DNA of 64,000 bases from Basidiobolus meristosporus CBS 931.73 (lineage: Eukaryota; Fungi; Basidiobolomycota), in NCBI GenBank assembly GCA_002104905.1, contig MCFE01000308.1, positions 1 through 64,000 on the forward strand, in the 5' to 3' direction. Every line of letters begins with the position of its first letter. Within the stretch, counting starts at the first letter, position 1. Under the pieces are notes generated by a model. That model did no database searches, was not told the DNA's origin, and worked only from the letters and a program-made list of their open reading frames with translations. Positions 16,280 through 63,815 of the stretch are shown one piece after another. The position numbers and the translations under genes are program-made.

Positions 16280-18307
16280 TTACCAGATGTTGACTCTCTC
16301 GGCTTCGCTACGGTACATTTTATCACCTTCCTTGACACCGAAAGCGTCATAGAATTCCTTGAAGTTGGATAAGGGACCATTGACTCTCCAAATGCCTGGG
16401 GCATGAGGGTCGGTACGAAGGCGGTAAAGAGCCTCTTCCTTGCGAACAACATTCTTCCAGACCGAAGCATAGGCAGTGAAGAACTGTTGCTCAGGAGTAA
16501 GTCCATCAACAGTACCAACGGCGCCAGGGTTGTTCTTTTGCCATTCTTGGAAAGCGAGATAAGACAATTTGACTCCACCGATATCAGCAATGTTTTCACC
16601 CTGGGTTAGGTTTCCATTGACCTTGGAGCCGTACATATCGAAGGTACTGTAAAGGTCAATGACAGTCTTGGCACGTTTATCGAACTCAGCAGCATCCTTG
16701 GGAGTCCACCAATCTTCAAGATTGCCTTGGGCGTTGTAGCTACGACCCTGGTCATCATATCCGTGGGTGATTTCGTGACCAATAACAGCGCCAATGCCAC
16801 CGAAATTGGCTGCAGCATTTCCTCTAGGATCCTTCTCATCAGGAGCGTAGAAGAATGGAGGCTGCAGGATACCAGCGGGGAATGCAATATCATTGTAGTT
16901 GGGATCATAGTAAGCATTAACCTCATAAGCAGTCATGAACCACTTGGATTTGTCGGTTGGACCATTGGAGGCCGACAGAACTGACTTGAAATTGGCGGCG
17001 TTGAGGTCAAGGACGTTGGTGAGGAATGGACTCTTGCGAGAAATCTTGATGTGAGAATAGTCCTTCCATTTGTCAGGATAACCAACCTTCACATTAAGGC
17101 CTTTCAATTTCTCAAGGGCGCGCTTACGAGTTTCTGGACTCATCCACTCGATGGTATCGAGGCGAGTGGCAAGTGCGTTTTGGATCAACTTGACCATCTC
17201 CAAAGCTTGGGCTTTAGCTTCAGGCTTGAATTTCTCCTGCACAAACAGCTGACTCAAGGTATCGGGAATTTGGGAGCCTATCTCGCTCAAAAGGAACTTG
17301 CCACGGGGGGATGGTTCACTTTGGCCACGGAGTGTACGACCGTAGAATTCAAAATCTTGTGCTTTGAACTGCTGGTCAAGATAGGTTGCACTGAATCCTA
17401 GAACATGCCATTCAAAATAGGTGCGCCAGTCCTCAGCACGGAATTGTTTGAATAGAGTGTTGAAGAACTTCAAGAAGTTGGGATTATCAACAATGACATC
17501 ACCATCTCCGAAGCAATGTCCCTTTTTCCATCCTAAGGATTGGCAATAGTTCAACCATGGGAATGCGGGCGTGATTTCTTTCAGTTGTTGGAAGCTAAGT
17601 TTGTTGTAGGTGCGATACACATCACGTTGTTCAACGGAAGATAGAGAGTTCTTAGCTAGGCCGGTTTCGAAATTCAACACAACCTTAGCCTTGGCCTGGG
17701 CGTTTTTGACCTTGGCAAGGGTAAGGATTTTCTCAATATGGGCAAGGTACTTTTGACGGATTTCAGCTTGGCCCTCTTCAGTATAATACTCTCTGCTGGG
17801 AAGAGAGAGACCGTTTTGACCGATGTAGCTCAACGTCCATGTAGAGTTCTTACTATCGGGCAGGGAGGAAATACCGAATAGAGGGCTTGAGCCATGAACG
17901 GAGACTGACAGACTATGAAGCTTGCCAAGTACTTTGGCAGCATCGTTAGGTGAGCGAATGCTACCTACATCACGAAGTAGACTCTTGATAGGAGCCAAAC
18001 CAGCCTTTTGGATAAGGGCGGTATCCATGCCCGAGGCATAGAAATCTCCCAAGAGACCACTTTTAGTAGAGTTGCCAGACTTTTCTAAGGTAGCCAGAAG
18101 GAAGTCGGAATTTCTCTGGTCAAGGACAGAGAAGGTGTTCCAGATGGAGCGATCGCCAGGCAGAGTGGTGTTCTTGATCCAATCGTAGTTGGCATGGAAG
18201 TAGAAATCTTGGGTGGCAGCAGGGGCTTGGGCCGGTAAGTCCTGTGCGTACACTGAGCTACCAGTGACTGCCAAAGACAATAGAAGAAGTCTAGTAGAGG
18301 TGCGCAT
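16280..18307 (-). CDS. Secreted M13 (neprilysin/PepO-type) zinc metallopeptidase, copy 1, intronless, 675 aa
   Basis: Signal peptide MRTSTRLLLLSLAVTGSSVYAQ; VNAYY, HEITH, GENIAD, DPHAP..RVNG. TATATAA on the minus strand at 18364-18370 supports this start over the longer ORF start. Confidence 0.95.
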   Translation of the reverse strand: MRTSTRLLLLSLAVTGSSVYAQDLPAQAPAATQDFYFHANYDWIKNTTLPGDRSIWNTFSVLDQRNSDFLLATLEKSGNSTKSGLLGDFYASGMDTALIQKAGLAPIKSLLRDVGSIRSPNDAAKVLGKLHSLSVSVHGSSPLFGISSLPDSKNSTWTLSYIGQNGLSLPSREYYTEEGQAEIRQKYLAHIEKILTLAKVKNAQAKAKVVLNFETGLAKNSLSSVEQRDVYRTYNKLSFQQLKEITPAFPWLNYCQSLGWKKGHCFGDGDVIVDNPNFLKFFNTLFKQFRAEDWRTYFEWHVLGFSATYLDQQFKAQDFEFYGRTLRGQSEPSPRGKFLLSEIGSQIPDTLSQLFVQEKFKPEAKAQALEMVKLIQNALATRLDTIEWMSPETRKRALEKLKGLNVKVGYPDKWKDYSHIKISRKSPFLTNVLDLNAANFKSVLSASNGPTDKSKWFMTAYEVNAYYDPNYNDIAFPAGILQPPFFYAPDEKDPRGNAAANFGGIGAVIGHEITHGYDDQGRSYNAQGNLEDWWTPKDAAEFDKRAKTVIDLYSTFDMYGSKVNGNLTQGENIADIGGVKLSYLAFQEWQKNNPGAVGTVDGLTPEQQFFTAYASVWKNVVRKEEALYRLRTDPHAPGIWRVNGPLSNFKEFYDAFGVKEGDKMYRSEAERVNIW

Positions 18308-27334: not shown

Positions 27335-27668
27335 TGTTTTAAGAGTCTTGGTGATGGTGGAAGTGATTGGAAGAACAAGTGTATTATGTGGGTTTCAGTT
27401 GATGATATAGTGTGTATAAGGGTGGGATTTATGCTTATACAAACCCGTAAATATGCCTAAGAAGATCCCAAAAATATGTGGGCAAAGTTTTGGGGGCTTT
27501 TGGATCACTTCAAGAAATTTGGTGTTTTGGGTACCTGTCAATTTGGTGAAATTATTAGAATTCCAACAAAGAATTAGGGCAGGAAATAGTGAAGTTCATA
27601 AGCTATGATCTAAATGTAAATGACCAAGGCAATGTGGATATTTAGGCGCAAATAGAAAACCTACAGCA
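27335..27668 (-). mobile_element. Degenerate solo LTR, same Copia family
   Basis: Reverse complement starts TGCTGTAG...CCTAAATAT and ends CCAAGACTCTTAAAACA, like the LTR end at 63113. Confidence 0.65.
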
Positions 27669-28079: not shown

Positions 28080-28426
28080 TGTTGTAAATTTCGCAACTAC
28101 ACCTAAATACTCACCTAACTTAGTCACTTAGATCATCACCTACAAATCTTAGAGAATACTGACCAAATTCCTTGTCGGGATTTACTTGGAATATTTCCAC
28201 AGAAACATCAGATACCCAGTACATGAAATATGTCAAAATTGTTCAAACAGCCCCAAACTTTGCACATATGTTCTTGGGACCTTGCTAAACATATTTTGCG
28301 CGTTTATTTGCCAAGACCATGTAAAAGTATAAACACTACTTTTACATTCAATAAATCATTAAGTGAAAACCACATAATCTACTTGTTCTCCCAATCACTT
28401 CCAATATCTCCAAGACTCTCACAACA
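28080..28426 (+). mobile_element. Solo LTR (347 bp), Copia family
   Basis: TGTTGT...ACAACA inverted termini, internal TATA-like AGTATAAA and AATAAA, same length as 20812-21158 and 63438-63784. No intact 5-bp TSD (cccaa vs tatat). Confidence 0.85.
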
Positions 28427-28737
28427 TATATATTATCAAGATATTTCAAACTCGCTCGAAAGCATCCTAACCTTGCACACGAGTTAAAAAATCCAATTAT
28501 GAAATTTTTGATGGAGGATGCTTGTGGTGAACTTTTGAATGTCTGTATGCAAAAATGTCGAACTTCAACCGAGTGCAATTAGACCATTCCGATAATATTC
28601 CGGCAACCTGGGAGTGAAGATAGAACATCCCAAAGACGCCCTATATACGGTAGAAGTTTTGATAGACCCCATTAGAACACTGTGTGAAAATCAGCAAAAA
28701 GCCAACTTAAATTAAGCTTACAGCTTTGAAAAAATTT

Positions 28738-28939
28738 TTGAGTTCTGTTCTTCTACTATTGAGAATGTACTCCACTGAGATTCATCTGCTGGAAGAGTGG
28801 TGTTTTTGATCCAATCATAATTGACATGGAAGTAGAAATCCTCCGAGGCAGCGGGCACCTGGGGTGGCAGGTCCTGAGCGTAGACATAGCTCACGTTGAC
28901 GGAAAATGACAGCATGAGGAGATGGATTGGCTTCCGCAT
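28738..28939 (-). pseudogene. 5'-truncated M13 peptidase copy (signal peptide plus about 45 aa)
   Basis: Nearly base-for-base identical to copy 2 (31511-31710) up to EEQNSK, then runs into unrelated sequence and a stop. The TATA-equivalent position reads TAAAAAA instead of TATAAAA. Confidence 0.9.
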
Positions 28940-29682
28940 TGGAATATTTAGTGAGTACAATAGGCAATGGGTGAATGCTGAAGACTAGTTGAAAGATGAG
29001 TGAAGTTTTTTAGTGTCGGCCTGGTTACCTATTTGATATTTAGCAGATGTTAACTCTTACTAAGCATCGGATCACCGATGAAAACTAAATAGAATCGTGG
29101 TTGAATCTGGGTCGATTCAGATATTTGCTTGTTCAGAAGCTTTTGTGACAGACGCTTTAGTATTGCTGAAACAAAGTCAACAAATACATTTAGCCAGTAG
29201 TTTTGGGCAACTTACAGTGTGTAAAAGTGGAGAGCTAGAAGGTTTACTTGTCCGTATGTTGGGTTCAGTTAAGGGATGTATGCTTTGAGGTGCACATCAT
29301 AGAACTAGTGATAAAGATGTTTTAAAGAAGGCCTCCGGAAGGTCATTTGAAAGCGCTTAATGTTTTGATAACTTCTAAGTGTCTTTATCGTCATAATTTG
29401 AATGGTTCATGTTGAAGATATCACAAAAGCCCTTGAACAAAGTTACCATCCGTCGACCTGATAACCCTACATCCTAACTGTTGTTAAACAACCAAACAAC
29501 CAACCCATATTCACTATGCGCAAATGCATTGAACACGCATGAAATGGTATGATTCAGGATTGGAATAGAATTTACAGGATGAGTATCAAGTTGACAAGGA
29601 CTTTAACAGAACAAAATTCGACATAACACAGGTAAGATACAAAAAGTTCATGAGTCATTTTGTTCACTTACACTCATGATAT

Positions 29683-31710
29683 TTACCAGATGTTAGCCCT
29701 TTCCGCTTCACTGCGATACATCTTATCTCCTTCCTTCACACCAAATGCATCGTAAAACTCTTGGAAGTTTGAGCATGGTCCGTTGACTCTCCAGATCCCC
29801 GGGGAGTGTGGGTCAGTACGAAGACGCAACAATGCCTCCTCCTTGCGAATGACATTCTTCCAAACTTGAGCATAGGCCGAGAAAAACTGTTGTTCTGGAG
29901 AAAGACCATCCACGGTGCCAACTGCTCCTGGGTTGTTCTTCTGCCATTCCTGAAAAGCCAGATAGGAGAGCTTCACTCCTCCAATATCCGCAATGTTCTC
30001 GCCTTGGGTCAGGTTTCCATTGACCTTGGCCCCATAGATCTCATAGCTGCTGTAGAGATCGACAACAATCTTCGCCCGCTTCTCGAACTCTGCTGCGTCG
30101 GTGGGGGTCCACCAATCCTCCAGGTTGCCTTGCGCGTTGTAGTTACGACCCTGATCATCATAGCCGTGGGTGATTTCATGCCCGATAACCGCCCCGATGC
30201 CTCCGAAGTTCGCGGCAGCATTTCCCCTGGGATCCTTCTCATCGGGTGGGTAGAAGAAAGGAGGCTGGAGAATTCCAGCTGGGAAGGCGATACTGTTGGA
30301 TGTGGGATCATAATAAGCATTCACTTCATAAGCAGTCATGTACCAGGTCGACTTATCGGTCGCAGAGTTGGAAGTATCTAGAACATGTTTGAAGCCTACT
30401 CCTGAGGCATTGAGAATATTAGAGAGCAAGGGTTGGCCACGAGATATTTTAACATCTGTATAGTTGTCCCATTTGTCTGGATAACCAATCTTGACATCGA
30501 GTCCCTTCAGTTTTTCAAGTGCACGCGCACGAGTCTCGGAACCCATCCACTCAATTGTCTGTAGGCGTGTTGCCAATGCATCCTGAATGAGGGTCACTAG
30601 CTCTTGAGCTTGTGCTTTGGCTTCGGGCTTGAATTTCTCCTGGACAAATGGCTGGCTCAGGGTATCGGGGATCTGAGAGCCGATCACACCTAACATAAAC
30701 TTCCACCGTGGGGATGGTTCACTTTGGCCTGAGAGAGTGCGTCCATAGAAGTCGAAATCTTGTGCTTCGTACTGCTGGCCAAGGTAGCTGGCACCGTAGC
30801 CAAGGACTTGCCACTGCAGGTATGTTCGCCAATCATCCGCATGGAAGCTGCTAAACAAGGTGTTGACATATCTTAGGAAGTTCGGGCTGTCCACTATCAC
30901 GTCACCATCACCGAAGCAATGCCCTTGCGGCCATCCCAGCGATTGGCAATAGGTGAGCCAGGGGAATGCCGGGGTGAGTGCCCGCAGTTGGTCGAAGGTG
31001 AGTTTGTTGTATGTGCGATACACATCTCGCATTTCAACGGATGATAGCGAGTTGTTGGCAAGGGCCGTCTCAAAGTCCAACACAACCTTGGCTTTGGCCG
31101 CACCATCCTTGACTTGGGCGAGGGTGAAGATCTTCTCAACATGCTCCTGATATTTCTGACGAATCTCAGCTTGATCCGGATCCAGGTAGTACTCTCTGCT
31201 AGGAAGTGATAGGCCACTCTGTCCAATGTAGGAGAGTGTCCAGGTCGAGTTTTTGCTATCAGGTTGGGCGCTGATTCCGAACAGAGGACTGCCCCCATGG
31301 ACGGAGATAAGAAGACTGTGGAGTTTGCCAATGGCTTTGGCGGTGTCATCAGGAGTGCGAACAATTGCCACCTGATTTAGCAAGGCTTTGATGGGATCTA
31401 AGCCCGATTGCTCAATCAGGGTAGTATTCATTCCCGAGGCATAGAAATCGCCCAGAAGGCTGGGTGTGGTTGAGTTTCCTGCCTTCTCCAGCAGGGTCAG
31501 GAGGACTTTTGAGTTCTGTTCTTCTACTATTGAGAATGTACTCCACTGAGATTCATCTGCTGGAAGAGTGGTGTTTTTGATCCAATCATAATTGACATGG
31601 AAGTAGAAATCCTCCGAGGCAGCGGGCACCTGGGGTGGCAGGTCCTGAGCGTAGACATAGCTCACGTTGACGGAAAATGACAGCACGAGGAGATGGATTG
31701 GCTTCCGCAT
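29683..31710 (-). CDS. Secreted M13 metallopeptidase, copy 2, intronless, 675 aa
   Basis: MRKPIHLLVLSFSVNVSYVYAQ; VNAYY, HEITH, GENIAD, DPHSP all intact. Confidence 0.95.
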   Translation of the reverse strand: MRKPIHLLVLSFSVNVSYVYAQDLPPQVPAASEDFYFHVNYDWIKNTTLPADESQWSTFSIVEEQNSKVLLTLLEKAGNSTTPSLLGDFYASGMNTTLIEQSGLDPIKALLNQVAIVRTPDDTAKAIGKLHSLLISVHGGSPLFGISAQPDSKNSTWTLSYIGQSGLSLPSREYYLDPDQAEIRQKYQEHVEKIFTLAQVKDGAAKAKVVLDFETALANNSLSSVEMRDVYRTYNKLTFDQLRALTPAFPWLTYCQSLGWPQGHCFGDGDVIVDSPNFLRYVNTLFSSFHADDWRTYLQWQVLGYGASYLGQQYEAQDFDFYGRTLSGQSEPSPRWKFMLGVIGSQIPDTLSQPFVQEKFKPEAKAQAQELVTLIQDALATRLQTIEWMGSETRARALEKLKGLDVKIGYPDKWDNYTDVKISRGQPLLSNILNASGVGFKHVLDTSNSATDKSTWYMTAYEVNAYYDPTSNSIAFPAGILQPPFFYPPDEKDPRGNAAANFGGIGAVIGHEITHGYDDQGRNYNAQGNLEDWWTPTDAAEFEKRAKIVVDLYSSYEIYGAKVNGNLTQGENIADIGGVKLSYLAFQEWQKNNPGAVGTVDGLSPEQQFFSAYAQVWKNVIRKEEALLRLRTDPHSPGIWRVNGPCSNFQEFYDAFGVKEGDKMYRSEAERANIW

Positions 31711-31769
31711 TGGAATATTTAGTAAATCCACTTGGGAAAGAGTGAATGCTTGAGATTGGGTCATGGATG

Positions 31770-31880
31770 TGGAGTTTTATAGTGTCGGCGAAAGCGCTTA
31801 CTTTCATCATTCACGATAGATCATATGGTAGATTGACTAATGCGGAGAATCGCAGTTACCAACTCTTATTAAGCATTAGA
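31770..31880 (-). promoter_or_regulatory. Conserved M13 upstream block (TATAAAA plus CGCAGTTACCAACTCTT motif on plus strand); equivalents at ~35195-35300, ~40040-40150, ~43290-43395
   Basis: Minus-strand TATAAAA at 31775-31781, 35199-35205, 40047-40053 and 43296-43302, each 66-70 nt from the ATG. Shared downstream-on-plus motif ATC(G/A)CAGTTACCAAC in all four. Confidence 0.6.
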
Positions 31881-33101
31881 TCAGCAACGTAAGGTGGGTA
31901 GAACCACTTGGCTACGTTGTGATCCAATTAACCGAGTATCCTCAGCAAAACAAGCGCTGAATCATGTTACGAAAATAGCAATTGGCTAGGAGAATGAGTA
32001 AATAGTGAATCAGCCTGCTAGAAATAGGATCAGCATGAAATCCATAAAATTGTTTATGCACGCTTAAAAACACCAACTTTTTCTATTCTTTTCATCATTG
32101 TAGATCCTTAGTAAAATTCGACACTGTATATGATCCAAGCAAAATCCCGAGTGGCAACAGTTGAGGCGTCATGGTTGACATGATTATTCGATTTAAAGGT
32201 TGGAATGTGCAGCTGGGTTTTCTCCATTGTTTCAAACCATGAAATGCGTTGGATCCAAGATGAACTAGTAATTATGAGTGAAGTATCGGTCAATTGACTC
32301 CCTTTTCATGGATTACCTTGGACTTTCATCACCCGCAGTGATTCGTGATTGGGTCAAGTAAATTGACAGGAATCCTGTCTGTAAGGTATTCACCGGTGTA
32401 AAATCTCAATTATTACAGCCTCGGCTTGGCATATTTTATTAGTCCGTGTCCACAAAGCTGAATAGTGCCCAAGATATAAAACCATATTTCCTATTTATAG
32501 AACACTTCTATTTATTCACACATTGGATTTTGAAGTAACAGTTACTAGCCAAATCTAGATTCAGGGTACTGTCATATGTTCTGAATCATCGACTCACTCT
32601 AGGTAATTCCTCATATTTCCCTTTCCAGGATGCCATTTTTGGACTCTCAAGATCCAACTATGTCTCAAAACTACCATGACGTATTGATCGTCAATAGTCA
32701 TGCGCTATCACACCTGTCAAGAAACCTATCGTTCTACATATTCCAATTTTTATTATTTGTTTGTCAATAAGATCCTCGGTAAGAAGTTGTGGAGCTGACG
32801 TACGTACTGGAAGAGTAGGCTAGTATGAAAACGCTAGGGCTAGACCGACCGGATAGAGCAGCCCGTCGTTATTAATAGATTTCCATTCGTAACCTATCAA
32901 GTTTAACTAAACTATAACCGGAAGTCCGAAGAATGTGAATCAGGCTCGACTGCTTTCACTTTGCAAGAATTTTACATAGGGATATTTATGACAATCTCGG
33001 GTTTACATTGAAATTCACATATAATGTTTTAGGTATTGTGGTTACAGATACATAGTTGTTTTTTTTCAAAATCTGAGTGACTTAACCTTCGCTAACAAGA
33101 T

Positions 33102-35129
33102 TTACCAGATGTTGACTCTTTCCGCTTCACTGCGATACATCTTATCTCCTTCCTTTACACCAAATGCTTCGTAAAACTCTTGGAGGTTTGAACAAGGTCC
33201 ATTGACTCTCCATATTGTTGGTGAGTGCGGGTCTATTTGAAGTGACAGCAATGCCAATTCTTTGCGAATGACATTCTTCCACAGCTGGCCAAAAGCTGTG
33301 AAAAACTGTTGTTCTGGAGAAAGACCGTCCACAGCGCCTATTACCCCTGGGTTTTTCTTCTGCCATTCCTGAAAAGCGAGATAGGAAAGCTTTAAACCTC
33401 CAATATCTCCAATGTTCTCACCTTGGGTTAGGTTTCCGTTGACCTTGACCCCATAGACCTCGTAGGTACTGTAGAGATCAATAAGAACTTTCGCTCGCTT
33501 CTCGAACTCTGCTGCGTCAGCAGGAGTCCACCAATCCTCCAGATTACCTTGTGCATTGTAATTGCGACCCTGATCATCATAACCGTGGGTAATCTCATGG
33601 CCGATGATTGATCCAATACTGCCAAAATTCGCGGCTACATTTCCGCTGGGATTATTCTCATCGGGAGGGTAGAAGAATGGCGGTTGGAGAATTCCTGCCG
33701 GGAAGTTAATACTGTTTTGCACTCCGTAATAGTAAGCGTTCACTTGGAAGGCAGACAGGAGCCACATCGATTTATCAGATGGTGAGTTGTAGGCTTGAAG
33801 ACCTTTCTTAAAGTTTAATCCGGAAACTTGGAGCACATTAGAGAGTAAGGGTTGGCCACGAGATATTTTAACATCTGTATAGTTGTCCCATTTGTCTGGA
33901 TAACCAATCTTGACATCGAGTCCCTTCAGTTTTTCAAGTGCACGCGCACGAGTCTCGGGACCCATCCACTCAATTGTCTGTAGGCGTGTTGCCAATGCAT
34001 CCTGAATGAGGGTCACTAGCTCTTGGGCTTGTGCTTTGGCTTCGGGCTTGAATTTCTCCTGGACAAATGGCTGGCTCAGGGTATCGGGGATATGATCGCC
34101 GATCACACCTAATATAAACTTCCAACGAGGAGATGGTTCACTTTGGCCTCGAAGAGTGCGTCCATAGAAGTCGAAATCTTGTGCTTCGTACTGCTGGCCA
34201 AGGTAGCTGGCACTGTAGCCAAGGACTTGCCACTGCAGGTATGTTCGCCAATCATCCGCATGGAAGTTGCTGAACAAGGTGTTGACGTGTCTTAGGAAGT
34301 TCGGGTTGTCCACTATCACGTCACCATCACCGAAGCAATGCCCTTGGGGCCACCCCAGCGATTGGCAATAGGTGAGCCAGGGGAATGCTGGGGTGAGTGC
34401 TCGCAGTTGTTCGAAGGTGAGTTTGTTGTATGTGCGATACACATCTCGCATTTCAACGGATGATAGCGAGTTGTTGGCAAGGGCCGTCTCAAAGTCCAAC
34501 ACAACCTTGGCTTTGGCCGCACCATCCTTGACTTGGGCGAGGGTGAAGATCTTCTCAACATGCTCCTGATATTTCTGACGAATCTCAGCTAGAGCAGCAT
34601 CCGAATAATATTCCCTGTTAGGAAGGGATAGGCCACTCTGTACAATGCGAGCAAGCGTCCAGGTCGAGTTTTTGCTATCAGGTTGGGCACTGATTGAGAA
34701 CAGAGGACTGCCTCCATGGACGGAGATAAAAAGACTGTGGAGTTTGCCAATGGCTTTGGCAGTGTCATCAGGAGTGCGAACAATTGCCACCTGATTTAGC
34801 AGGGCTTTGATGGGATCTAAGCCCGATTGCTCAATCAGGGTAGTATTCATTCCCGAGGCATAGAAATCGCCCAGTAGGCTGGGTGTGGTTGAGTTTCCTG
34901 CCTTCTCCAGCAGGGTCAGAAGATATTCTTTGTTCCGTTCTTGTACTATTGTGAATGCATTGCTCTGAGTCTGATCCGGTGGAAGAGTGGTGTTTTTGAT
35001 CCAATCATAATTGACATGGAAGTAGAAATCCTCCGAGGCAGCGGGCACCTGGGGTGGCAGGTCCTGAGTGTAGACATAGCCCACGTTGACGGACAAGGAC
35101 AGCACGAGGAGATGGATTGGCTTTCGCAT
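33102..35129 (-). CDS. Secreted M13 metallopeptidase, copy 3, intronless, 675 aa, most divergent pocket
   Basis: HEITH, GENIGD, DPHSP intact. Variant segments LLSAFQVNAYYYGVQN, GSIGSIIGHEITH, AFGQLW, LSLQIDPH. Confidence 0.95.
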   Translation of the reverse strand: MRKPIHLLVLSLSVNVGYVYTQDLPPQVPAASEDFYFHVNYDWIKNTTLPPDQTQSNAFTIVQERNKEYLLTLLEKAGNSTTPSLLGDFYASGMNTTLIEQSGLDPIKALLNQVAIVRTPDDTAKAIGKLHSLFISVHGGSPLFSISAQPDSKNSTWTLARIVQSGLSLPNREYYSDAALAEIRQKYQEHVEKIFTLAQVKDGAAKAKVVLDFETALANNSLSSVEMRDVYRTYNKLTFEQLRALTPAFPWLTYCQSLGWPQGHCFGDGDVIVDNPNFLRHVNTLFSNFHADDWRTYLQWQVLGYSASYLGQQYEAQDFDFYGRTLRGQSEPSPRWKFILGVIGDHIPDTLSQPFVQEKFKPEAKAQAQELVTLIQDALATRLQTIEWMGPETRARALEKLKGLDVKIGYPDKWDNYTDVKISRGQPLLSNVLQVSGLNFKKGLQAYNSPSDKSMWLLSAFQVNAYYYGVQNSINFPAGILQPPFFYPPDENNPSGNVAANFGSIGSIIGHEITHGYDDQGRNYNAQGNLEDWWTPADAAEFEKRAKVLIDLYSTYEVYGVKVNGNLTQGENIGDIGGLKLSYLAFQEWQKKNPGVIGAVDGLSPEQQFFTAFGQLWKNVIRKELALLSLQIDPHSPTIWRVNGPCSNLQEFYEAFGVKEGDKMYRSEAERVNIW

Positions 35130-35413
35130 TGGGATGTTTGGCGAATTCAATTGGTACTAGTTGAATGCTTGTGATTAGGCCAAGGACGATGAGTGGAATT
35201 TTATAGTGTCGGCCAGATTACCTCCTCACGGTTAATGATGAATCAGATGAGTGATTCTAGCTAGAGCGGAGGATCGCAGTTACCAACTCTTACTGAGCGT
35301 TAGATCAGTAATGAAAACTATATTGAATCACAAGTGAACCATCGGGGCCATAAGCCTGATAGGCATGGTATGATTCATTATGGAATGATCCTGAAGCCTA
35401 ATTGGCGGGAAAA

Positions 35414-35850
35414 TTAGGCAGCCAAGAGAATCTGGGCTGATGCAGAGATTTGCTTATGCAGATTAGAAACCGTGAGCCATGTGCATTTTCCCACACCATC
35501 AACGGTAAACGCTTGGCCAGTTTGATCAGCCTTCAACCAGAAATCACTCAACTGAGCCTTATCTGAGAGCACTCTGTCATCTGGGTATTCCATTTCGAAG
35601 GAGACGGTGGAACTAAAAGCAAAATATGATTGCTTATCATTGCTTGCGATCACTAGCCCGCCATGGATTTCGTCATGGCTGGCATATACTAGAATTTAGA
35701 ATCCAGGCTGAAACTTCTCCAATTGATCCACCGACAAGCGCAAATCCCCGCACTAGCCCGGTAGTCCGGGGTTTCATGCTTTGCAGTCAACGCTGTGACG
35801 CCGTGGATAAGCTTGATTCAACTATTGGCACTAGACGAGCAAGTGTACCG
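35414..35850 (-). pseudogene. Decayed unidentified ORF in spacer upstream of copy 3, homologous to ~43640-43930
   Basis: VPIVES...DLRLSVDQLEKFQ...YASHDEIHGGLVIASN aligns with VPIVDS...DLRLSMRLLEGFQ...YTSHTEIHVGLSIARN, with several synonymous third-position differences. Both have stops and frameshifts. Confidence 0.35.
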
Positions 35851-37141
35851 CTTATGCTATGATGTTGTGGAGCTATAGAACTGCGGATGTGATTGTTTTA
35901 TCCGAAGAAATTCGGAGGAAACCCTCACTATCGAAACGATTTAACGCCTACAGTGGAGCAGAACTGGTGATTGCTTCATCAGAGATAGTTTCACTTGCTA
36001 TAGTAAATCCCGAGTTACCACTCGCAAGGGTCGATGACTTCACGCCATTCTGATTGAGAGATTGATCTTCTCTGATTGTAATAAGCATCGGCATCAGATC
36101 CATCTTCAAACCATTTCTTGAATTATGTTGGTCTCATTCCAATTGACGTAGTTGCTTTTTACAGGGATGATTTAGCGCGCCAGAAAGGTATCGCTGGTCA
36201 TGTCGCGATGATGCAAATATGAGAACCCATGCCCGAATTGAAACAACAATATTGCCCAGGAGTGTATGAAACTGCGAGAGACCCAAGAGTCATGGTATTG
36301 CGAAAAGCCTCTGGTAATAGTCCTGTTCAGGTATGACAATCCATTATCTTAGTCCAGCAAGTCTCTTGACCCAACTTCAATTGAAATATACGTTTCCAAT
36401 CGCTGATGTTGAACCTATTACTTTAGGCAAGTTCAAGCCACGAGCAAAAATTGGCACCGGTATTTCTGCATCCTCATACAATTCTGACATCATGCAAGGC
36501 TGATCAATGTGCAGGCATCACCTCTACAGTATCTTCGATTCTTATTTATGAAGACCTACGGTTCCACCAATTCTTATCCTCAATTCCATCCCTTCAATGA
36601 TAACACATTTATCACAAACCTGTTCAAAATGATGATCACTGCGATTGATCTTTTGCCATGAACACCTGTCATGCCAACAGTTTACGGGCTGATTGTCATT
36701 TAGTTATATCCATATGTATGATGCTATTCCAGGTTTCTTGGATATAATTATGTTGCGTACTCAAGTACCATAAATGAGCACACCATGTCCCCTAGACCAC
36801 TTCCTAGATCCATTATGTGTATACAGTAAGATTCTATCAATCACTCCTGTGCCCACTCTCTCCTATTCTTAATTGTTCTAGTGATGGTCCACTATATTAC
36901 GAAGGTGGGAAAGCTGACCAAGTGGTTGGGGCTTCGAAGCGTATTATATGTTACCTGTTAGTCTAGGACCTTATGTGGTAAGCCAAGTCGAAGGAGGGGG
37001 GCTCAATAATCGGCTCCCCCAGATAGCACATTGCACCTTCTACACATATCTTAGGGTTAGGGTACAAAGAGAGATCTTATTCTTCTTTACAAACTCCCTC
37101 CACTTACACTTTCTCTAAATCTCCCCCGGATATTATTTATA

Positions 37142-37209
37142 TTTACAAGTTCAAGGCTTGGTCATTGACTCTTGACTAGGATATAATGACCAAGCCTTGA
37201 ACTTGTAAA
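37142..37209. repeat. Perfect 25-bp inverted repeat with 18-nt loop
   Basis: TTTACAAGTTCAAGGCTTGGTCATT (37142-37166) and its exact reverse complement AATGACCAAGCCTTGAACTTGTAAA (37185-37209). Confidence 0.95.
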
Positions 37210-37953
37210 AGCTACATATCCAATAAGAATTATTTTTGCTCTAGCTTCCATTATACCTTTATACCCTATATAGAATACCCTAATAGAATTTTAGATGGCA
37301 TTAGTTTAGATCAAACATGCAATTCACCCTGATATACACTACTTATGAGCCTAACTACTAACATTCTAATAAGTTATAAGCAATGTAAAGTTTAAGGTTG
37401 TTTGTAGGGTAGAATACCAGCATTGAAATGCAATAATGAAATTCTTACTAGAAAGCTTTCATATATTGCAGATGTATTTCATACGTGATCAATAAAAACA
37501 TGCAAAGGAGTTTTAAGACTGGTAGAATTTCATTTAAAATACGAATACTTCAAGATACAATTGGCTAAATATGGAGCACCTGTAAGTTGTATTTGCTGTT
37601 AGCAACACCTGCATATATTAGCAAACATCATAAAATTCAACTTTATAGGGATACTTGGTTGTTATAATTCAAAGGTTCACGTTGAATATACAGCTTGGCT
37701 TCCCAATAAAACCAGTCAAGCAAAGTTGAGCCCTTTCAGCCCATTAACCTCAGATTCCAATCCTTATTATACAACCAGCTATTCGTTCATTTCGCCCAAA
37801 TGCACTGAGCATTTAACGAATGATATTTTTCAAGATAGAAGCTTCATTTACAGGATGGATGTTAAGTTAAGCAAGATGGTTATAGAACAGTACATCACAC
37901 AGGCGAGATACAAAAATTGCATGGGTCACTTAGTTCACTTACACTCACGATAT

Positions 37954-39981
37954 TTACCAGATGTTTGCCCTTTCCGCTTCACTGCGATACATCTTATCCC
38001 CTTCCTTCACACCAAATGCATCGTAAAACTCTTGGAAGTTTGAGCATGGTCCGTTGACTCTCCAGATCCCCGGGGAGTGTGGGTCGGTACGAAGACGCAA
38101 CAATGCCTCCTCCTTGCGAATGACATTCTTCCAAACTTGAGCATAGGCCGAGAAAAACTGTTGCTCTGGAGAAAGACCATCCACGGTGCCAACTGCTCCT
38201 GGGTTGTTCTTCTGCCATTCCTGAAAAGCCAGATAGGAGAGCTTCACTCCTCCAATATCCGCAATGTTCTCGCCTTGGGTCAGGTTTCCATTGACCTTGG
38301 CCCCATAGATCTCATAGCTGCTGTAGAGATCGACAACAATCTTCGCCCGCTTCTCGAACTCTGCTGCGTCGGTGGGGGTCCACCAATCCTCCAGGTTGCC
38401 TTGCGCGTTGTAGTTACGACCCTGATCATCATAGCCGTGGGTGATTTCATGCCCGATAACCGCCCCGATGCCTCCGAAGTTCGCGGCAGCATTTCCCCTG
38501 GGATCCTTCTCATCGGGTGGGTAGAAGAAAGGAGGCTGGAGAATTCCAGCTGGGAAGGCGATACTGTTGGATGTGGGATCATAATAAGCATTCACTTCAT
38601 AAGCAGTCATGTACCAGACAGATTTATCAGATGGCGAGTTTGATGCTTTCAGAATCTTCTTGAAATGTACCCCAGCGATATTGAGCACGTTGGAGAGCAA
38701 GGGTCGATTTCGAGAAATCTCAATATATGTGTAGTTATCCCAATTTTCTGGATAACCAATCTTGACATCGAGTCCCTTCAGCTTTTCAAGTGCACGCGTA
38801 CGAGTCTCAGGACCCATCCACTCAATTGTCTGTAGGCGTGTTGCCAATGCATCCTGAATGAGGGTCACCATCTCTTGAGCTTGTGCTTTGGCTTCGGGCT
38901 TGAATTTCTCCTGGACAAATGGCTGGCTCAAGGTATCAGGGATCTGAGAGCCTATCACACCTAACATAAACTTCCACCGTGGGGATGGTTCACTTTGGCC
39001 TCGAAGAGTGCGTCCATAGAAGTCGAAATCTTGTGCTTCGTACTGCTGGCCAAGGAAGCTGGCACTGTAGCCAAGGACTTGCCACTGCAGGTATGTTCGC
39101 CAATCATCCGTATGGAAGCTGCTGAACAAGGTGTTGACGTATCTTAGGAAGTTCGGGTTGTCCACTATCACGTCACCATCACCGAAGCAATGCCCTTGGG
39201 GCCATCCCAGCGATTGGCAATAGGTGAGCCAGGGGAATGCCGGGGTGAGTGCTCGCAGTTGTTCGAAGGTGAGTTTGTTGTATGTGCGATACACATCTCG
39301 CATTTCAACGGATGATAGCGAGTTGTTGGCAAGGGCCGTCTCAAAGTCCAACACAACTTTGGCTTTGGCCGCACCATCCTTGACTTGGGCGAGGGTGAAG
39401 ATCTTCTCAACATGCTCCTGATATTTCTGACGAATCTCAGCTTGATCCGGATCCAGGTAGTACTCTCTGCTAGGAAGTGATAGGCCACTCTGTCCAATGT
39501 AGGAGAGTGTCCAGGTCGAGTTTTTGCTATCAGGTTGGGCGCTGATTCCGAACAGAGGACTGCCTCCATGGACGGAGATAAGAAGACTGTGGAGTTTGCC
39601 AATGGCTTTGGCGGTGTCATCAGGAGTGCGAACAATTGCCACCTGATTTAGCAAGGCTTTGATGGGATCTAAGCCCGATTGTTCAATCAGGGTAGTATTC
39701 ATTCCCGAGGCATAGAAATCGCCCAGTAGGCTGGGTGTGGTTGAGTTTCCTGCCTTCTCCAGCAGGGTCAGGAGGAATTTTGAGTTCCTTTCGTCTACTA
39801 CTGAAAATGTATTCCACCGAGACTGATCTGGTGGCAGGGTTATGTTTTTGATCCAATCATAATTGACATGGAAGTAGAAATCCTCCGAGGCAGCAGGCAC
39901 CTGGGGTGGCAAGTCCTGAGTGTAAACATAGCCCGCGTTGATGGACAATGACAGCACGAGGAGATGGATTGGCTTTCGCAT
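37954..39981 (-). CDS. Secreted M13 metallopeptidase, copy 4, intronless, 675 aa
   Basis: All catalytic motifs intact; last ~220 codons almost identical to copy 2. Confidence 0.95.
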   Translation of the reverse strand: MRKPIHLLVLSLSINAGYVYTQDLPPQVPAASEDFYFHVNYDWIKNITLPPDQSRWNTFSVVDERNSKFLLTLLEKAGNSTTPSLLGDFYASGMNTTLIEQSGLDPIKALLNQVAIVRTPDDTAKAIGKLHSLLISVHGGSPLFGISAQPDSKNSTWTLSYIGQSGLSLPSREYYLDPDQAEIRQKYQEHVEKIFTLAQVKDGAAKAKVVLDFETALANNSLSSVEMRDVYRTYNKLTFEQLRALTPAFPWLTYCQSLGWPQGHCFGDGDVIVDNPNFLRYVNTLFSSFHTDDWRTYLQWQVLGYSASFLGQQYEAQDFDFYGRTLRGQSEPSPRWKFMLGVIGSQIPDTLSQPFVQEKFKPEAKAQAQEMVTLIQDALATRLQTIEWMGPETRTRALEKLKGLDVKIGYPENWDNYTYIEISRNRPLLSNVLNIAGVHFKKILKASNSPSDKSVWYMTAYEVNAYYDPTSNSIAFPAGILQPPFFYPPDEKDPRGNAAANFGGIGAVIGHEITHGYDDQGRNYNAQGNLEDWWTPTDAAEFEKRAKIVVDLYSSYEIYGAKVNGNLTQGENIADIGGVKLSYLAFQEWQKNNPGAVGTVDGLSPEQQFFSAYAQVWKNVIRKEEALLRLRTDPHSPGIWRVNGPCSNFQEFYDAFGVKEGDKMYRSEAERANIW

Positions 39982-41200
39982 TGGAATATGGTAAATCCAC
40001 TTAGTAGCGCGTGAGTGCTGGACTGATGGGCAAAATGAGGGCTGACTTTTATATTGTCAACCTGATTACCTACTCATCGTCCTTGAGTGATCAGATGATT
40101 GATTCTTGCCAAAATAGAGATCACAGTTACCAACGCTTAATGACATTAGATCAGCAATGGAAGGATGTTCGAACCACAAGTGAACCATCGGCTGCAATAC
40201 AATCCAATGAACTTGGTATTATCATCAAAATAAACAAGGGCTGAATCATAAATTGCTCTATAGTAGTAATAATTGGCTGAGCAGGTGGGTGGACTAGTGA
40301 ATCAGCGAGCTGGAAATAGGATTAGCATGAGATCCAAAGATTCATTAGTGCAGGTTTAAAAATACGAAGCAACCTTTCTATTCTTTCGCCCTATCACCAT
40401 TGTACGTCCTTGGGAAAATTCGGCACTGTGCCAGATTCAAATGAAAACCCGTGCTGCAAAATGGCTAATACGACTACTCGATTTAAAGGTTCAAAAGTGC
40501 AGTTGGATTCTTTATGTAGTGTTTCGAACCACTGATTGCATTGGATCTGATATAGGCTTGTAAACCAAGTACGGATCAACTAGTATTCGCTTCGTGACTT
40601 GCCTTGAACTTCCGTAATCTATGATAGTTCCTGATTGGATCCAGCAGCAACACAGAAATTCCACAAGCAACAGTATCCAGTAGTGCGAATCTGACAGGAA
40701 GCAGGTATATAGGTATTGTATATTTCAAAGCCTTCTGCCAGGGAAATTAATGGGTTGGCCTAAAGCCTGAAGTTAAATATCATATGTATAGGCGATTTCC
40801 GTTTATTCACATCTCAGATACTTGAACTGTTTCTAGCCAGTCAAACATTTCAAACTATTGACCCTCAACCAAGATTCACCAGAAATTATGATGAAGTTCC
40901 CCATTTTCCCATGCATGATGCCACCTCTATACACTAGAGTCACCTAAATGCCTTAATATGAATAGTATGTATTGAATACCGAATAGCAAATCTATTAACA
41001 GAGGCAAAGTCATCTGGCCCTTCAATAAGCTGAGCTATAAGCAGTAACTTTGAGAATTCACTTAGATAGCCTTATATTCTGTTTTAACGAGAAAGTTTCT
41101 ACTTGGTGAAAATTGCGCTGTGCCCATATAGGATCCACCAGGTATGCTTGGATTATATGCATTCAAAAATTGGATGATGTTCTTGCCTTAGTTCGCAATT

Positions 41201-43228
41201 TTACCAGATATCTGCCCTTTCCGCTTCACTGCGATACATCTTATCCCCTTCCTTCACATCAAATGCATCGTAAAACTCTTGAAAGTTCGAGCATGGTCCG
41301 TTGACTCTCCAGATCCCCGGGGAGTGTGGGTCAATTTGAATATACAGCAACGCCTCCTCCTTGCGAATGATATTCTTCCAAACTTGAGCATAGGCCGAGA
41401 AAAACTGTTGCTCTGGAGAAAGACCATCCACGGTGCCAACTGCTCCTGGGTTGTTCTTCTGCCATTCCCGAAAAGCCAGATAGGAGAGCTTCACTCCTCC
41501 AATATCCGCAATGTTCTCGCCTTGGGTCAGGTTTCCATTGACCTTGGCCCCATAGATCTCATAGCTGCTGTAGAGATCGACAACAATCTTCGCCCGCTTC
41601 TCGAACTCTGCTGCGTCAGTGGGGGTCCACCAATCCTCCAGGTTGCCTTGCGCGTTGTAGTTACGACCCTGATCATCATAGCCGTGGGTGATTTCATGCC
41701 CGATAACCGCCCCGATGCCTCCGAAGTTCGCGGCAGCATTTCCCCTGGGATCCTTCTCATCGGGTGGGTAGAAGAAAGGAGGCTGGAGAATTCCAGCTGG
41801 GAAGGCGATACTGTTGTATGTTCCATAATAGTACGCGTTCACTAGATAAGGAGCCATGAGCCATATCGATTTATCAGATGGCGAGTTTGATGCTTTCAGA
41901 ATCTTCTTGAAATTTACCGCAGAGATATTGAGCACATTGGAGAGCAAGGGTAAATTACGAGCTATTTCAACATCCGTGTAGTTATCCCAATTTTCTGGAT
42001 AACCAATCTTGACATCGAGTCCCTTCAGCTTTTCAAGTGCACGCGCACGAGTCTCGGGACCCATCCACTCAATTGTCTGTAGGCGTGTTGCCAATGCATC
42101 CTGAATGAGGGTCACTAGCTCTTGAGCTTGTGCTTTGGCTTCGGGCTTGAATTTCTCCTGGACAAATGGCTGGCTCAAGGCATCAGGGATCTGAGAGCCT
42201 ATCACACCTAACATAAACTTCCACCGTGGGGATGGTTCACTTTGGCCTCGAAGAGTGCGTCCATAGAAGTCGAAATCTTGTGATTTATACTGCTGGCCAA
42301 GGTAGCTGGCACTGTAGCCAAGGACTTGCCACTGCAGGTATGTTCGCCAATCATCCGTATGGAAGCTGCTGAACAAGGTGTTGACGTATCTTAGGAAGTT
42401 CGGGCTGTCCACTATCACGTCACCATCACCGAAGCAATGCCCTTGGGGCCATCCCAGCGATTGGCAATAGGTGAGCCAGGGGAATGCCGGGGTGAGTGCC
42501 CGCAGTTGTTCGAAGGTGAGTTTGTTGTATGTGCGATACACATCTCGCATTTCAACGGATGATAGCGAGTTGTTGGCAAGGGCCGTCTCAAAGTCCAACA
42601 CAACCTTGGCTTTGGCCGCACCATCCTTGACTTGGGCGAGGGTGAAGATCTTCTCAACATGCTCCTGATATTTCTGACGAATCTCAGCTTGATCCGGATC
42701 CAGGTAGTACTCTCTGCTAGGAAGTGATAGGCCACTCTGTCCAATGTAGGAGAGTGTCCAGGTCGAGTTTTTGCTATCGGGCCAGGCACTGATTCCGAAT
42801 AAAGGGCTTCCACCATATACTGAAATTGCGAGACTGTGGAGTTTGCCAATGGCTTTGGCGGTGTCATCAGGAGTGCGAACAATTGCCACCTGATTTAGCA
42901 AGGCTTTGATGGGATCTAAGCCTGATTGCTCAATCAGGGTAGTATTCATTCCCGAGGCATAGAAATCGCCCAGAAGGCTGGGTGTGGTTGAGTTTCCTGC
43001 CTTCTCCAGCAGGGTCAGGAGGAATTTTGAGTTCCTTTCATCTACTGCGGCAAACGGACTCCACTGAGTCTGGTCTGGTGGCAGAGTTATGTTTTTGATC
43101 CAATCATAATTGACATGGAAGTAGAAATCCTCCGAGGCAGCAGGCACCTGGGGTGGCAAGTCCTGAGTGTAAACATAGCCCGCGTTGATGGACAATGACA
43201 GCACGAGGAGATGGATTGGCTTTCGCAT
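41201..43228 (-). CDS. Secreted M13 metallopeptidase, copy 5, intronless, 675 aa
   Basis: All catalytic motifs intact. Variant patches QWSPFAAV, LMAPYLVNAYYYGTYN and LYIQIDPH in an otherwise copy-4-like scaffold. Confidence 0.95.
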   Translation of the reverse strand: MRKPIHLLVLSLSINAGYVYTQDLPPQVPAASEDFYFHVNYDWIKNITLPPDQTQWSPFAAVDERNSKFLLTLLEKAGNSTTPSLLGDFYASGMNTTLIEQSGLDPIKALLNQVAIVRTPDDTAKAIGKLHSLAISVYGGSPLFGISAWPDSKNSTWTLSYIGQSGLSLPSREYYLDPDQAEIRQKYQEHVEKIFTLAQVKDGAAKAKVVLDFETALANNSLSSVEMRDVYRTYNKLTFEQLRALTPAFPWLTYCQSLGWPQGHCFGDGDVIVDSPNFLRYVNTLFSSFHTDDWRTYLQWQVLGYSASYLGQQYKSQDFDFYGRTLRGQSEPSPRWKFMLGVIGSQIPDALSQPFVQEKFKPEAKAQAQELVTLIQDALATRLQTIEWMGPETRARALEKLKGLDVKIGYPENWDNYTDVEIARNLPLLSNVLNISAVNFKKILKASNSPSDKSIWLMAPYLVNAYYYGTYNSIAFPAGILQPPFFYPPDEKDPRGNAAANFGGIGAVIGHEITHGYDDQGRNYNAQGNLEDWWTPTDAAEFEKRAKIVVDLYSSYEIYGAKVNGNLTQGENIADIGGVKLSYLAFREWQKNNPGAVGTVDGLSPEQQFFSAYAQVWKNIIRKEEALLYIQIDPHSPGIWRVNGPCSNFQEFYDAFDVKEGDKMYRSEAERADIW

Positions 43229-43639
43229 TGGAATTTGGTAAATCCACTTGGTAAAGATTGTATGCCTGAGAATAGGACAAGGATCATCAGTGGAGTTTTA
43301 TAATGTTGGAATGGTCACCTACTCGAGGCTCATGCTGGATCAGATGATTGATTTTGGGGAAAACGGAAAATCGCAGTTACCAACTCTTGCTGAGAAATTG
43401 GTCAGCAACCGAAATACATTTAAAGCACAAGTGAATCATCGACTACACTGCAGTTTTTTCAAAATTAGAGTGGTGATGAGTCTGATCAGCAGAAAGTATG
43501 ACAGCTAAGTGGACTTCTTACTGCGGATTAGAAGATGCTAAGTGGCCATGCGCATTATCTCACCCCAGCAATGGTAAAAGCCTGACCAGATCGCTCATTG
43601 TGCATTCTACTAGCGGATGTCACTACACAGAGCCAACCC

Positions 43640-43930
43640 TGCTAGCTCTTGGTTATCGGGGTATTTCTTCTCCTAAGTGGCAGTGATCGACAGGCAATTA
43701 GTGATAATTGCGGATTATTCCTTGCGATTGACAGCCCAACATGAATTTCGGTATGACTGGTATATTCCAGTTGTCTTCAGATTCTATTCTGAAACCCTTC
43801 CAGTAACCTCATTGACAAGCGTAAATCACCATGCCTCCTTGGTAACCTGCGGTTCCGCGCCAAATTGTCACCACTGTGACACCTTAACCATGCCCGAATC
43901 AACTATTGGTACAGGCGGAGGAAACATACT
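43640..43930 (-). pseudogene. Second copy of the decayed spacer ORF, upstream of copy 5
   Basis: Nucleotide homology to ~35560-35850, e.g. ttgcgattgacagcccaacatgaatttcg vs ttgcgatcactagcccgccatggatttcg. Confidence 0.35.
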
Positions 43931-44984
43931 CCAAGTGATGTGGTTGAGTTGTCGGTCTGCGGATGCGATTGATTGGCATGATAAGGAAGCCCCTACGGAT
44001 TTACCCCATACACAACAATGATGTATTGGAAATTGCTTCACTTTCTGTGCAGCAACCACCAAGCATCTAAAGTTACCACTTCAAAGGCTAAATGGCTTAA
44101 CATCAGATACATCTTTAAATTATATCTCCGATAACCACATTTTGATCCCGGTTGACATGGCTGCACATGCAGTGACAATCTGAAGCGTCGGGGTTGTGGC
44201 TTTCCTTTTGTCGCGACATGGCTTCAACCAGTCACTTTTCTAGTATCCATATGTATCAATGCAGCATTCTTCACTTGCGAAAATCATGAAGATTTTGCTA
44301 CATCCATTTCCAACTAATTGGGATTGATTTCCTAACGAACAGCTCTCTGAATTGGGGCGAACTGCAATTTCAACTCTAGGTATTCTTTACATTAGCATCC
44401 TTCATACGGCCAGCTCTGCTGCAAGGTAGTAAATGCAAGCCAGCCATAGTAAGCCCTTGTTCCAGAATCCACAGAGATACCAAGATTTTGGAGGTTGGTG
44501 AGAAATAGAAAAACGAGTATGCTTCCCTTATTGATTTAGTGAGTAGAAATCCAATATACAAACCATTTGAGAGCTCCCTATGTTGCGAACGGTAGGTTTA
44601 GCACCTGATTATTAATGTATTTTACACTTTCATCTTACCAACTCAAGGTTTACTGACTTGGAATGAATGTCATATTCACCAACTCTTGAGTTGTAGAGAT
44701 ACTGGAAACTACCAAAAGCTTCAATCGCACCTTGTATTATGTACACAACTTCCTGGAACCTTTCACAACGTTACTTATACAAAGTTCACACAAAAGCACT
44801 ACCATAACTTCGCATATCTACATATGAAAGGCCTCGCTTACCTCTAAGCACCCCCCCCAAATCATATTCAGCCACTCACTGTTACCTTCAACACCCTACT
44901 GGTGGTATGCTTGGAAGTGATCTGATGATATTAAACATCACGTTTGTTGGTATTTGTTAGTTTACTGGGCTAAAGTCGAGTGCT

Positions 44985-45120: not shown

Positions 45121-45394
45121 TAGGGCTCATTTTTGGATCTAGTAGTGTATGTATTGCATCGGGCATCGTATAGAGTACTCTTAGGCAAAGATGAAGCCCG
45201 GCGATTAATTGGAATTCTACTAGAGTGGAACGCTTGGGGCTCTTAATTAGAAAACATCAAGGTTGCTAACTGTAGATGATATTTAATTATCTGGGCAATG
45301 CTTGGAAGTATGTAGAGGTAAAAGAAAAGGATAACCTTAAGTAAAGTAGCATCTCTGTAGCTGGTGAGCATTGGAGTGGGGTAGCAATCTACAA

Positions 45395-63113: not shown

Positions 63114-63144
63114 GGCTACAAGCTCCAAGCTGTCACTCTCTGCA

Positions 63145-63797: not shown

Positions 63798-63815
63798 AAG
63801 CTGTAACTCTTTGCA

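Follow-up and report, generated by a model that had tools for sequence, protein, structure and literature searches.

In the NWD/HET WD-repeat genes of Podospora, exchange between repeats within and between genes homogenizes the scaffold while a few recognition positions stay diverse, and this exchange gives rise to large allelic diversity under demonstrated positive selection. The array studied here lies in a window of 64,000 nucleotides (nt) of Basidiobolus meristosporus CBS 931.73 (assembly GCA_002104905.1, contig MCFE01000308.1, positions 1 to 64,000 of the forward strand, referred to throughout as the window). In contrast to the Podospora genes, it consists of whole-gene paralogues, which code for M13 (neprilysin/PepO-type) peptidases, with few variants and with a ratio of non-synonymous to synonymous divergence (dN/dS) below 1. 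Conversion-homogenized duplicates with a narrow peak of divergence are an established pattern (review PMC3924837; gibbon opsins PMC3213168): the primate L/M (red/green) opsins, described by the Teshima-Innan "peak of divergence" model, are likewise neighboring duplicates older than their coding divergence suggests, and likewise show frequent conversion and a short divergence peak around a few functionally important residues. Unlike the opsins, which are two genes, the Basidiobolus array has four copies in two lineages; it is intronless and thus offers no intron-exon contrast, and its homogenization ends at the ends of the open reading frames (ORFs). It is also known from one assembly, and the functional role of its retained residues is putative. 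Lineage-specific M13 expansions in Drosophila (Nepl genes, PMC7822871) and in anaerobic chytrids (PMC8778642) have likewise multiplied secreted M13 genes, but those reports concern copy number and function, not conversion mosaics. None of the papers found that name both Basidiobolus and M13 describes the array. It is a well-resolved new case of a known process and not a new mechanism.

The history considered probable for this array, with good though not full confidence, is the duplication of a two-gene unit followed by repeated conversion confined to the ORFs, which left short relic islands of the older sequence. On the sequence evidence, it is strongly supported that ORF-confined ectopic gene conversion homogenized the coding scaffold of four copies (c2–c5), owing to the discordance between flanks and ORFs, concordant runs of silent sites, tracts that alternate within 700 nt, and an excess of AT-to-GC changes. 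All results rest on one assembly, and the permutation tests were performed with in-house Sawyer-type scripts that follow GENECONV logic rather than with the GENECONV or RDP programs.

Two Lineages and Their Flanks

The window harbors five intact, intronless M13 peptidase genes, all on the minus strand and all predicted to be secreted, together with one 5′ fragment. Each of c1–c5 measures 2028 nt from a common MRKP start, and the five align with one another without gaps. The genes are as follows:

16280..18307, minus strand: c1, fifth intact M13 paralogue, 11 kb off the array; outgroup
29683..31710, minus strand: c2, intact M13 peptidase, 675 amino acids from MRKP; lineage A by its flanks
33102..35129, minus strand: c3, intact M13 peptidase; lineage B; retains the B-type catalytic third
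37954..39981, minus strand: c4, intact M13 peptidase; lineage A by its flanks; the sole copy with Arg at residue 55
41201..43228, minus strand: c5, intact M13 peptidase; lineage-B flanks; ORF A-type except for three islands

The c1 protein is 71–77% identical to those of c2–c5. The ORF of c2 also extends upstream to an ATG at 31764. A TATAAAA box is conserved ∼70 nt upstream of the common ATG in c2–c5 (31640-31800, 35060-35220, 39910-40070, and 43160-43320), and its position favors the MRKP codon over the ATG at 31764 as the start of c2.

The assignment to lineages was derived from the DNA outside the ORFs, in which two upstream spacers could each be aligned with a single partner:

31711..32687, minus strand: c2 upstream spacer; sole homologue, at ∼62% identity, is the c4 upstream spacer 39982-40975
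35137..35898, minus strand: c3 upstream spacer; sole homologue, at ∼64% identity, is the c5 upstream spacer 43234-43974

Sensitive alignments of the flanks showed that c2 and c4 alone share ∼980 nt upstream and 300 nt downstream, and that c3 and c5 alone share ∼770 nt upstream; all remaining pairs have only the proximal 200–245 nt upstream in common. Lineage A therefore comprises c2 and c4, and lineage B comprises c3 and c5. The Kimura two-parameter (K2P) distance between flanks was 0.36–0.58 within the lineage pairs (0.36–0.42 for c2-c4). The proximal spacers of c2 and c4 (31891-32255 and 40166-40547) were 69–70% identical, with a K2P of 0.39–0.42, and their downstream flanks were 72% identical. 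These pair-specific flanks indicate that a two-gene unit, one A-type and one B-type gene, was duplicated. The old duplication gave the pairs c3-c2 (about 29383-35898) and c5-c4 (about 37654-43974).

Homogenization of the Coding Sequences

The ORFs do not follow the relationship of their flanks. Within the coding sequences (CDS), the following segments carry the contrast (nucleotide numbers below are those of the CDS, counted from the common start):

29683..30346, minus strand: c2 3′ tract, CDS nt 1365-2028; near-identical to c4 37954-38617
41372..41816, minus strand: newest c5 conversion tract, CDS nt 1413-1857; two differences from c4
33102..33764, minus strand: c3 B-type relic of the catalytic third, CDS nt 1366-2028
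30347..30462 in c2 (33766-33881 in c3, 38618-38733 in c4, 41865-41980 in c5), minus strand: hypervariable segment, CDS ∼nt 1249-1364, residues 417-455

The last 664 CDS bases of c2 and c4 differ at only four positions (nt 1818, 1896, 1983, and 2016), and the longest identical run between them is 453 nt. The K2P of c2-c4 was 0.006 in nt 1365-2028 and 0.028 in nt 214-1248. An earlier note on this DNA had claimed near-identity of the 3′ ∼660 nt of these two copies next to upstream spacers that are alignable but more diverged, and both observations are borne out by these values. The N-terminal domain is homogenized in all four copies c2–c5; a variable N-terminal patch lies at nt 136-213. The hypervariable segment joins c2 to c3 and c4 to c5 and has a c2-c4 K2P of 0.52. 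In c5, one of the two differences from c4 within the newest tract is a single B-type silent site, nt 1611. The c5 protein is 94% identical to that of c4, 91% to that of c2, and 86.5% to that of its flank partner c3. c3 carries 160 singleton sites, which are dense from nt 1372 onward; in the catalytic third its proportion of synonymous differences from the A-type is ∼0.5. This proportion was 0.00–0.09 in the homogenized segments, 0.4–0.9 in the islands, and ∼0.8 in comparisons with c1. The tracts are graded in age, at 0.6%, 2.8%, and 12% divergence.

The mosaic was also evident from statistical analysis. Sawyer-type permutation of polymorphic sites was globally significant with all sites (P ≤ 0.0005) and with silent sites only (P = 0.006). 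Along the gene, the 54 quartet-informative sites switched topology 11 times (P about 1e-5): the flanks give c2c4|c3c5, a topology backed by 18 sites in the ORF, where 32 sites favor c2c3|c4c5; these sites are arranged in blocks. Identity collapses ∼10–40 nt upstream of the ATG and directly past the stop codon. The check proposed in the earlier note, namely sliding-window identity and GENECONV-type analysis with the flanks included, thus yielded significant runs, and identity did not fall uniformly across coding and flanking DNA but had sharp boundaries at the ATG and the stop codon. The A-B-A-B-A pattern within 700 nt shows that single unequal crossovers did not produce the mosaic.

Substitutions in nt 1417-2025, polarized with c1, were unequal in direction between the lineages. 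The A lineage had 16 AT-to-GC changes against 3 GC-to-AT changes, and the B lineage 13 against 30; GC content at third codon positions was 0.573 and 0.462, respectively. An AT-to-GC excess is the signature of GC-biased gene conversion, and as read from these counts it suggests that such conversion is at work in this fungus.

The events following unit duplication can be outlined as follows. Repeated ectopic conversion has overwritten most of the four ORFs, from ∼10–40 nt before the ATG to the stop codon. In the catalytic third, the A-type sequence has become near base-for-base common to c2, c4, and c5, with c3 keeping the old B-type. c5 has been left with short B-type relics only, two of which flank the newest, 445-nt tract and lie at the substrate-binding VNAYY strand and just ahead of the catalytic Asp-x-His. 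The outcome is four enzymes, predicted to be secreted, that have one scaffold and four different sets of residues in or next to the active site. They may act as extracellular oligopeptidases that serve in nutrition or that break down peptides of the host or of microbes in the gut habitat of Basidiobolus. RNA-templated conversion was also considered as the cause of the ORF-only homogenization and was ruled out, as the DNA of c4 and c5 past the stop codon is not homogenized (40% identity). Likewise, c1 showed no sign of exchange with the array; its lone "significant" run with c2 and c4 (nt 1372-1385) reflects a derived B-type state in c3 and c5.

Probable Relic Islands

Four short segments stand out from the homogenized background:

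41817..41865, minus strand: c5 relic island 1, CDS nt 1364-1412, residues 455-471, around VNAYY then YG; c3-like
41333..41371, minus strand: c5 relic island 2, CDS nt 1858-1896, residues 620-632, YIQI just before Asp-Pro-His; partly c3-like
42776..42835, minus strand: c5-only island, CDS nt 394-453; of its differences from c2 and c4, 13 are synonymous and 5 non-synonymous
34591..34656, minus strand: c3-only island, CDS nt 474-539; c3's own relic

Island 1 has ten sites with the c3 state, two of them synonymous (nt 1392 and 1398). Island 2 has 10 differences from c4 and five sites with the c3 state; it is bordered on its 5′ side by the 445 nt with 2 differences from c4 and on its 3′ side by 132 nt with 5. 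The earlier note had reported a c3-like string of ∼20 nt at ∼41331-41351 in c5 and a comparable island around the YYYG patch. The string was found at exactly 41331-41351, but the island to which it belongs is ∼39 nt long; the island at the YYYG patch was as described.

Compared with c3, the two c3-like islands have 15 differences in 66 positions and 11 in 56, synonymous ones included. This divergence is like that of the old flanks, and synonymous states are held in common with c3; the islands are therefore best read, at the level of sequence, as probable old relics of an originally B-type c5 that lie between tracts of different age. Fresh substitutions on a homogenized background were ruled out as their origin, since synonymous divergence is high in them too. 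The c5-only island is as far from c2–c4 as c1 is, with a proportion of synonymous differences of 0.8–0.9; it is a relic of great age or else sequence imported from a paralogue beyond the window. Self-BLAST of the window revealed no further M13 copy as its donor.

Residues at and beside the Active Site

Every copy contains the motifs HEITH, ENIAD (ENIGD in c3), VNAYY, DPH, and WRVNG. The motifs HExxH, ENxxD, and VNAxx, as defined for M13 (PMC4701951), align with those in solved M13 structures. With c3 as the B-type reference, A/B amino-acid divergence within the catalytic third is highest where the two c3-like islands of c5 lie (permutation P = 0.0018), and the ratio of replacement to silent-only codons in these islands is 3.8 times that of the rest of the catalytic domain (Fisher P = 0.013). 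Both islands are located within or next to segments with strong conservation across 112 bacterial-type homologues; for the segment of island 1, the mean column entropy is 0.50 vs. 1.08. The pair of residues after VNAYY is Asn-Pro in ∼90% of these homologues, Asp-Pro in c1, c2, and c4, and Tyr-Gly in c3 and c5; Pro469, conserved in 90% of the homologues, is thus changed in c3 and c5. Thr632, which precedes the catalytic Asp and is conserved in 96%, is Ile in c3 and c5. YYYG and QIDPH were present in no other available Basidiobolus homologue. In the AlphaFold model of c5, residues 466-468 form an edge strand, and island 2 forms a helix end leading into the catalytic Asp-Pro-His.

The copies also differ outside the islands. 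Arg55, found in 96% of the 112 homologues, is kept only in c4 (39817-39819); the residue is Gln in c2, c3, and c5 and Ile in c1, and c3 has Ser in place of a 99%-conserved Trp neighboring residue 55. Neprilysin numbering was mapped provisionally from the neprilysin sequence near the motifs, and it agrees internally with published residue numbers. Residue 55 is taken here to be the equivalent of neprilysin Arg102, and c3 presumably differs from the other copies at the equivalents of neprilysin 579, 580, 692, and 714 in the S1′ pocket. As judged from the aligned sequences, each copy is thus a different combination of putatively active-site-proximal states.

In neprilysin, Arg102 binds the C-terminal carboxylate of the substrate. 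Asn542 and Arg717 bind the substrate backbone and Phe544 forms S1, Arg102 and Arg110 form S2′, and Phe106, Trp693, and Gly714 shape S1′ (PMC4908401; PMC12686026). Substitutions at neprilysin positions 705, 709, and 714 alter substrate specificity (PMC4121237).

Alternative Explanations

An account without conversion, in which the genes are recent whole-gene duplicates or in which strong purifying selection acts on the ORFs while the flanks drift, draws on the expectation that coding DNA is more conserved than spacers. It is extremely improbable, as silent differences are 0.00–0.02 in the tracts, near saturation to c1 (∼0.8), and high in the islands; the permutation test is significant with silent sites only, the topology alternates along the gene, and single unequal crossovers cannot yield the A-B-A-B-A order within 700 nt. 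An artefact of assembly or polishing, in which reads were collapsed or mis-mapped among paralogues that are 87–94% identical, is very unlikely. The genes are indeed found in one assembly only, with a protein cluster of 3 members on 1 contig, and the 453-nt identical run exceeds short-read length. Against this, none of the five ORFs is broken, the tracts show graded and not all-or-none ages, tract boundaries fall at ORF ends, the copies are separated by unique spacers of 1.2–2.8 kb on a contig of 97.8 kb, and the AT-to-GC bias in the homogenized lineage is a biological signature not expected from an artefact. It could also be proposed that c5 is an A-type gene whose c3-like islands are short recent imports, the donor being c3 or a paralogue in an unsampled part of the genome. 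Conversion typically leaves tracts that are short and alternate, other Basidiobolus M13 genes exist, and the high synonymous divergence of the c5-only island could stem from a paralogue outside the window. This proposal appears improbable nonetheless: the 15 and 11 differences from c3 are too many for a recent c3-to-c5 transfer, the ∼770 nt of B-type flank make a B-type origin followed by overwriting the simpler history, and neither YYYG nor QIDPH occurs in the other available homologues of the genus.

Given relic islands produced by conversion, their persistence can be explained in two ways. The islands may be kept by selection, if their loss would deprive a copy of a distinct substrate preference, as in the "peak of divergence" model; from the sequence comparisons, the odds of this against a mechanical stop are about even. 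In the mechanical account, conversion is equally real but its tracts need near-identity, mismatch-rich heteroduplex is aborted, and diverged segments of 40–60 nt are skipped; this account as a whole is assigned a chance somewhat short of one half. It is favored by an A/B nucleotide divergence of 41% and 27% in the islands vs. 16.5% elsewhere (P = 0.0016), and by the lone B-type silent base at nt 1611 inside the newest tract, as patchy mismatch repair would leave. On the other hand, the island divergence is mostly amino-acid-changing and at family-conserved positions, so that something first drove the change in the B lineage; divergence at silent sites only is not raised in the islands (P = 0.76); and conversion crossed B-type DNA ∼16% diverged in c5 (nt 1413-1857).

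Several observations weigh against selective retention and the wider picture built on it, beginning with the single assembly. The island residues adjoin known M13 substrate-contact residues but are not themselves listed as contacts in the papers examined, and neprilysin positions 546-547 and 705-708 were not among the inhibitor contacts in the inhibitor literature examined. dN/dS is ∼0.3–0.6 inside the islands and below 1 everywhere, which also suits the mechanical account. Since total nucleotide divergence peaks at the same places as amino-acid divergence, heteroduplex rejection would predict the same map, and selection and mechanics are inseparable on this evidence. In the third island of c5 (nt 394-453), which falls within a segment variable across the family, most differences are synonymous; an island can evidently survive with little change in amino acids. 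With just two or three islands, any test for enrichment is weak. The description of the residues as pocket-lining is tentative, as it depends on adjacency to motifs and on the provisional neprilysin numbering, and the term "ongoing" for the conversion is suggested only by the near-zero divergence of the newest tract. The earlier note had proposed that conversion homogenizes the scaffold while selection retains or shuffles specificity patches, in a manner similar to antigen or receptor gene arrays. The role of conversion stands, given the flank/ORF discordance, the silent runs, and the GC bias; that of selection is only plausible; and the likeness to antigen or receptor arrays was overstated, as four copies with a few relics are not a diversity-generating system.

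A bolder reading is that the array is a small combinatorial toolkit, in which conversion moves the scaffold and pocket segments and selection keeps at least three independent specificity modules apart. These modules would be the Arg55 (S2′) site, the VNAYY-YG strand with the QI-Asp-x-His patch, and the S1′ equivalents of neprilysin 579, 580, 692, and 714. If this were true, each gene would be a functionally distinct combination tuned to vertebrate-gut peptides, and the B-type islands would be co-retained in c5 through mutual contact or through contact with the same substrate residue. This reading is regarded as unlikely.

With unit duplication and ORF-confined conversion as the favored history, the array, found in an early-diverging fungus, is a clear case from nature of ORF-confined conversion with relic islands beside the active site and a GC-biased signature. 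c4 and c5 are almost the same outside the islands, the hypervariable segment (residues 417-455), and the N-terminal patch, and with so few differences they form a natural pair for asking which M13 residues beyond the classical S1′/S2′ set determine substrate preference. There is also a warning for annotation, as gene trees of these M13 peptidases will not mirror their duplication history.

Family Identity and Relatives

All five copies were full-length on the Pfam profiles Peptidase_M13_N (E 1e-103 to 1e-105) and Peptidase_M13 (E 1e-62 to 1e-66), with values of 2e-105 and 1e-66 for c2. Residues 31-675 of c4 were covered by phmmer alignments to the solved structures 9eyg, 7k1v, and 3zuk (E 1e-124 to 1e-132), the best E being 1e-132 to 9eyg and that to Zmp1 (3zuk) 1e-124. 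The AlphaFold model of c5 had a mean predicted local distance difference test score (pLDDT) of 93.2 and a predicted template modeling score of 0.90, and together with the phmmer alignments it indicates the two-lobed M13 fold. The disordered residues 1-21 of the model were read as a probable signal peptide. A six-residue insert (YPPDEK or YAPDEK) was observed at residues 487-492, after PPFF, in all Basidiobolus copies compared with 9eyg, 7k1v, and 3zuk; it is the internal part of the model with the lowest confidence (pLDDT 78–87).

Bacterial-type M13 oligopeptidases (PepO, Zmp1; 9eyg, 3zuk, 9fma) and human neprilysin have the same two-domain M13 fold as the array proteins and share with them HExxH, ENxxD, VNAxx, Asp-x-His, and the Arg equivalent to neprilysin 717. 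The bacterial enzymes are 42–44% identical to the array proteins. Neprilysin has a type II membrane anchor, whereas the array enzymes are secreted with a predicted signal peptide. Of the five copies, c4 alone retains the presumed equivalent of Arg102; c3 and c5 moreover depart from the family in the Tyr-Gly that replaces the conserved Asn/Asp-Pro after VNAYY and in the Ile that replaces Thr before the catalytic Asp.

The closest named proteins were those of Basidiobolus ranarum and B. meristosporus (72–80% identity). Outside Basidiobolus, a word search gave bacterial M13 proteins (Chthoniobacterales, Pontibacter) as the nearest, at 41–44% identity. In a tree of 122 sequences the ten fungal sequences formed one clade, in which c2–c5 grouped together in a single clade, with a B. 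meristosporus protein as its sister, and c1 belonged to a second Basidiobolus clade. [quoted passage not shown] The intronless genes and the bacterial nearest relatives would fit either an old horizontal acquisition or an ordinary fungal M13 lineage.

Other Features of the Window

A further trace of the array lies downstream of c2:

28736..29031, minus strand: sixth M13 copy, represented by a truncated 5′ fragment with proximal upstream DNA and ∼67 codons

The fragment is 92.6% identical to the 5′ end of c2 and may be the remnant of a third duplication unit. It breaks off beside a copy of a dispersed ∼350-nt repeat (28080-28430). This repeat belongs to a family of ∼340–350 nt, 68–84% identical and present in both orientations, with members at 20811-21160, 21160-21580, 27332-27668, 28080-28430, 45392-45497, and 62060-63990; several copies adjoin one another at 62.0–64.0 kb. 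Tandem Repeats Finder made no call on these repeats, which have no long ORF or tRNA-like part and may be a non-autonomous mobile element or a satellite that has degraded. The tandem-repeat and tRNA scans gave nothing relevant to the array. The other ORFs of the window encode UBR1-type E3 ligase, F-box, KA1, sugar-transporter, and Mem_trans domains, which indicate that the window is eukaryotic.

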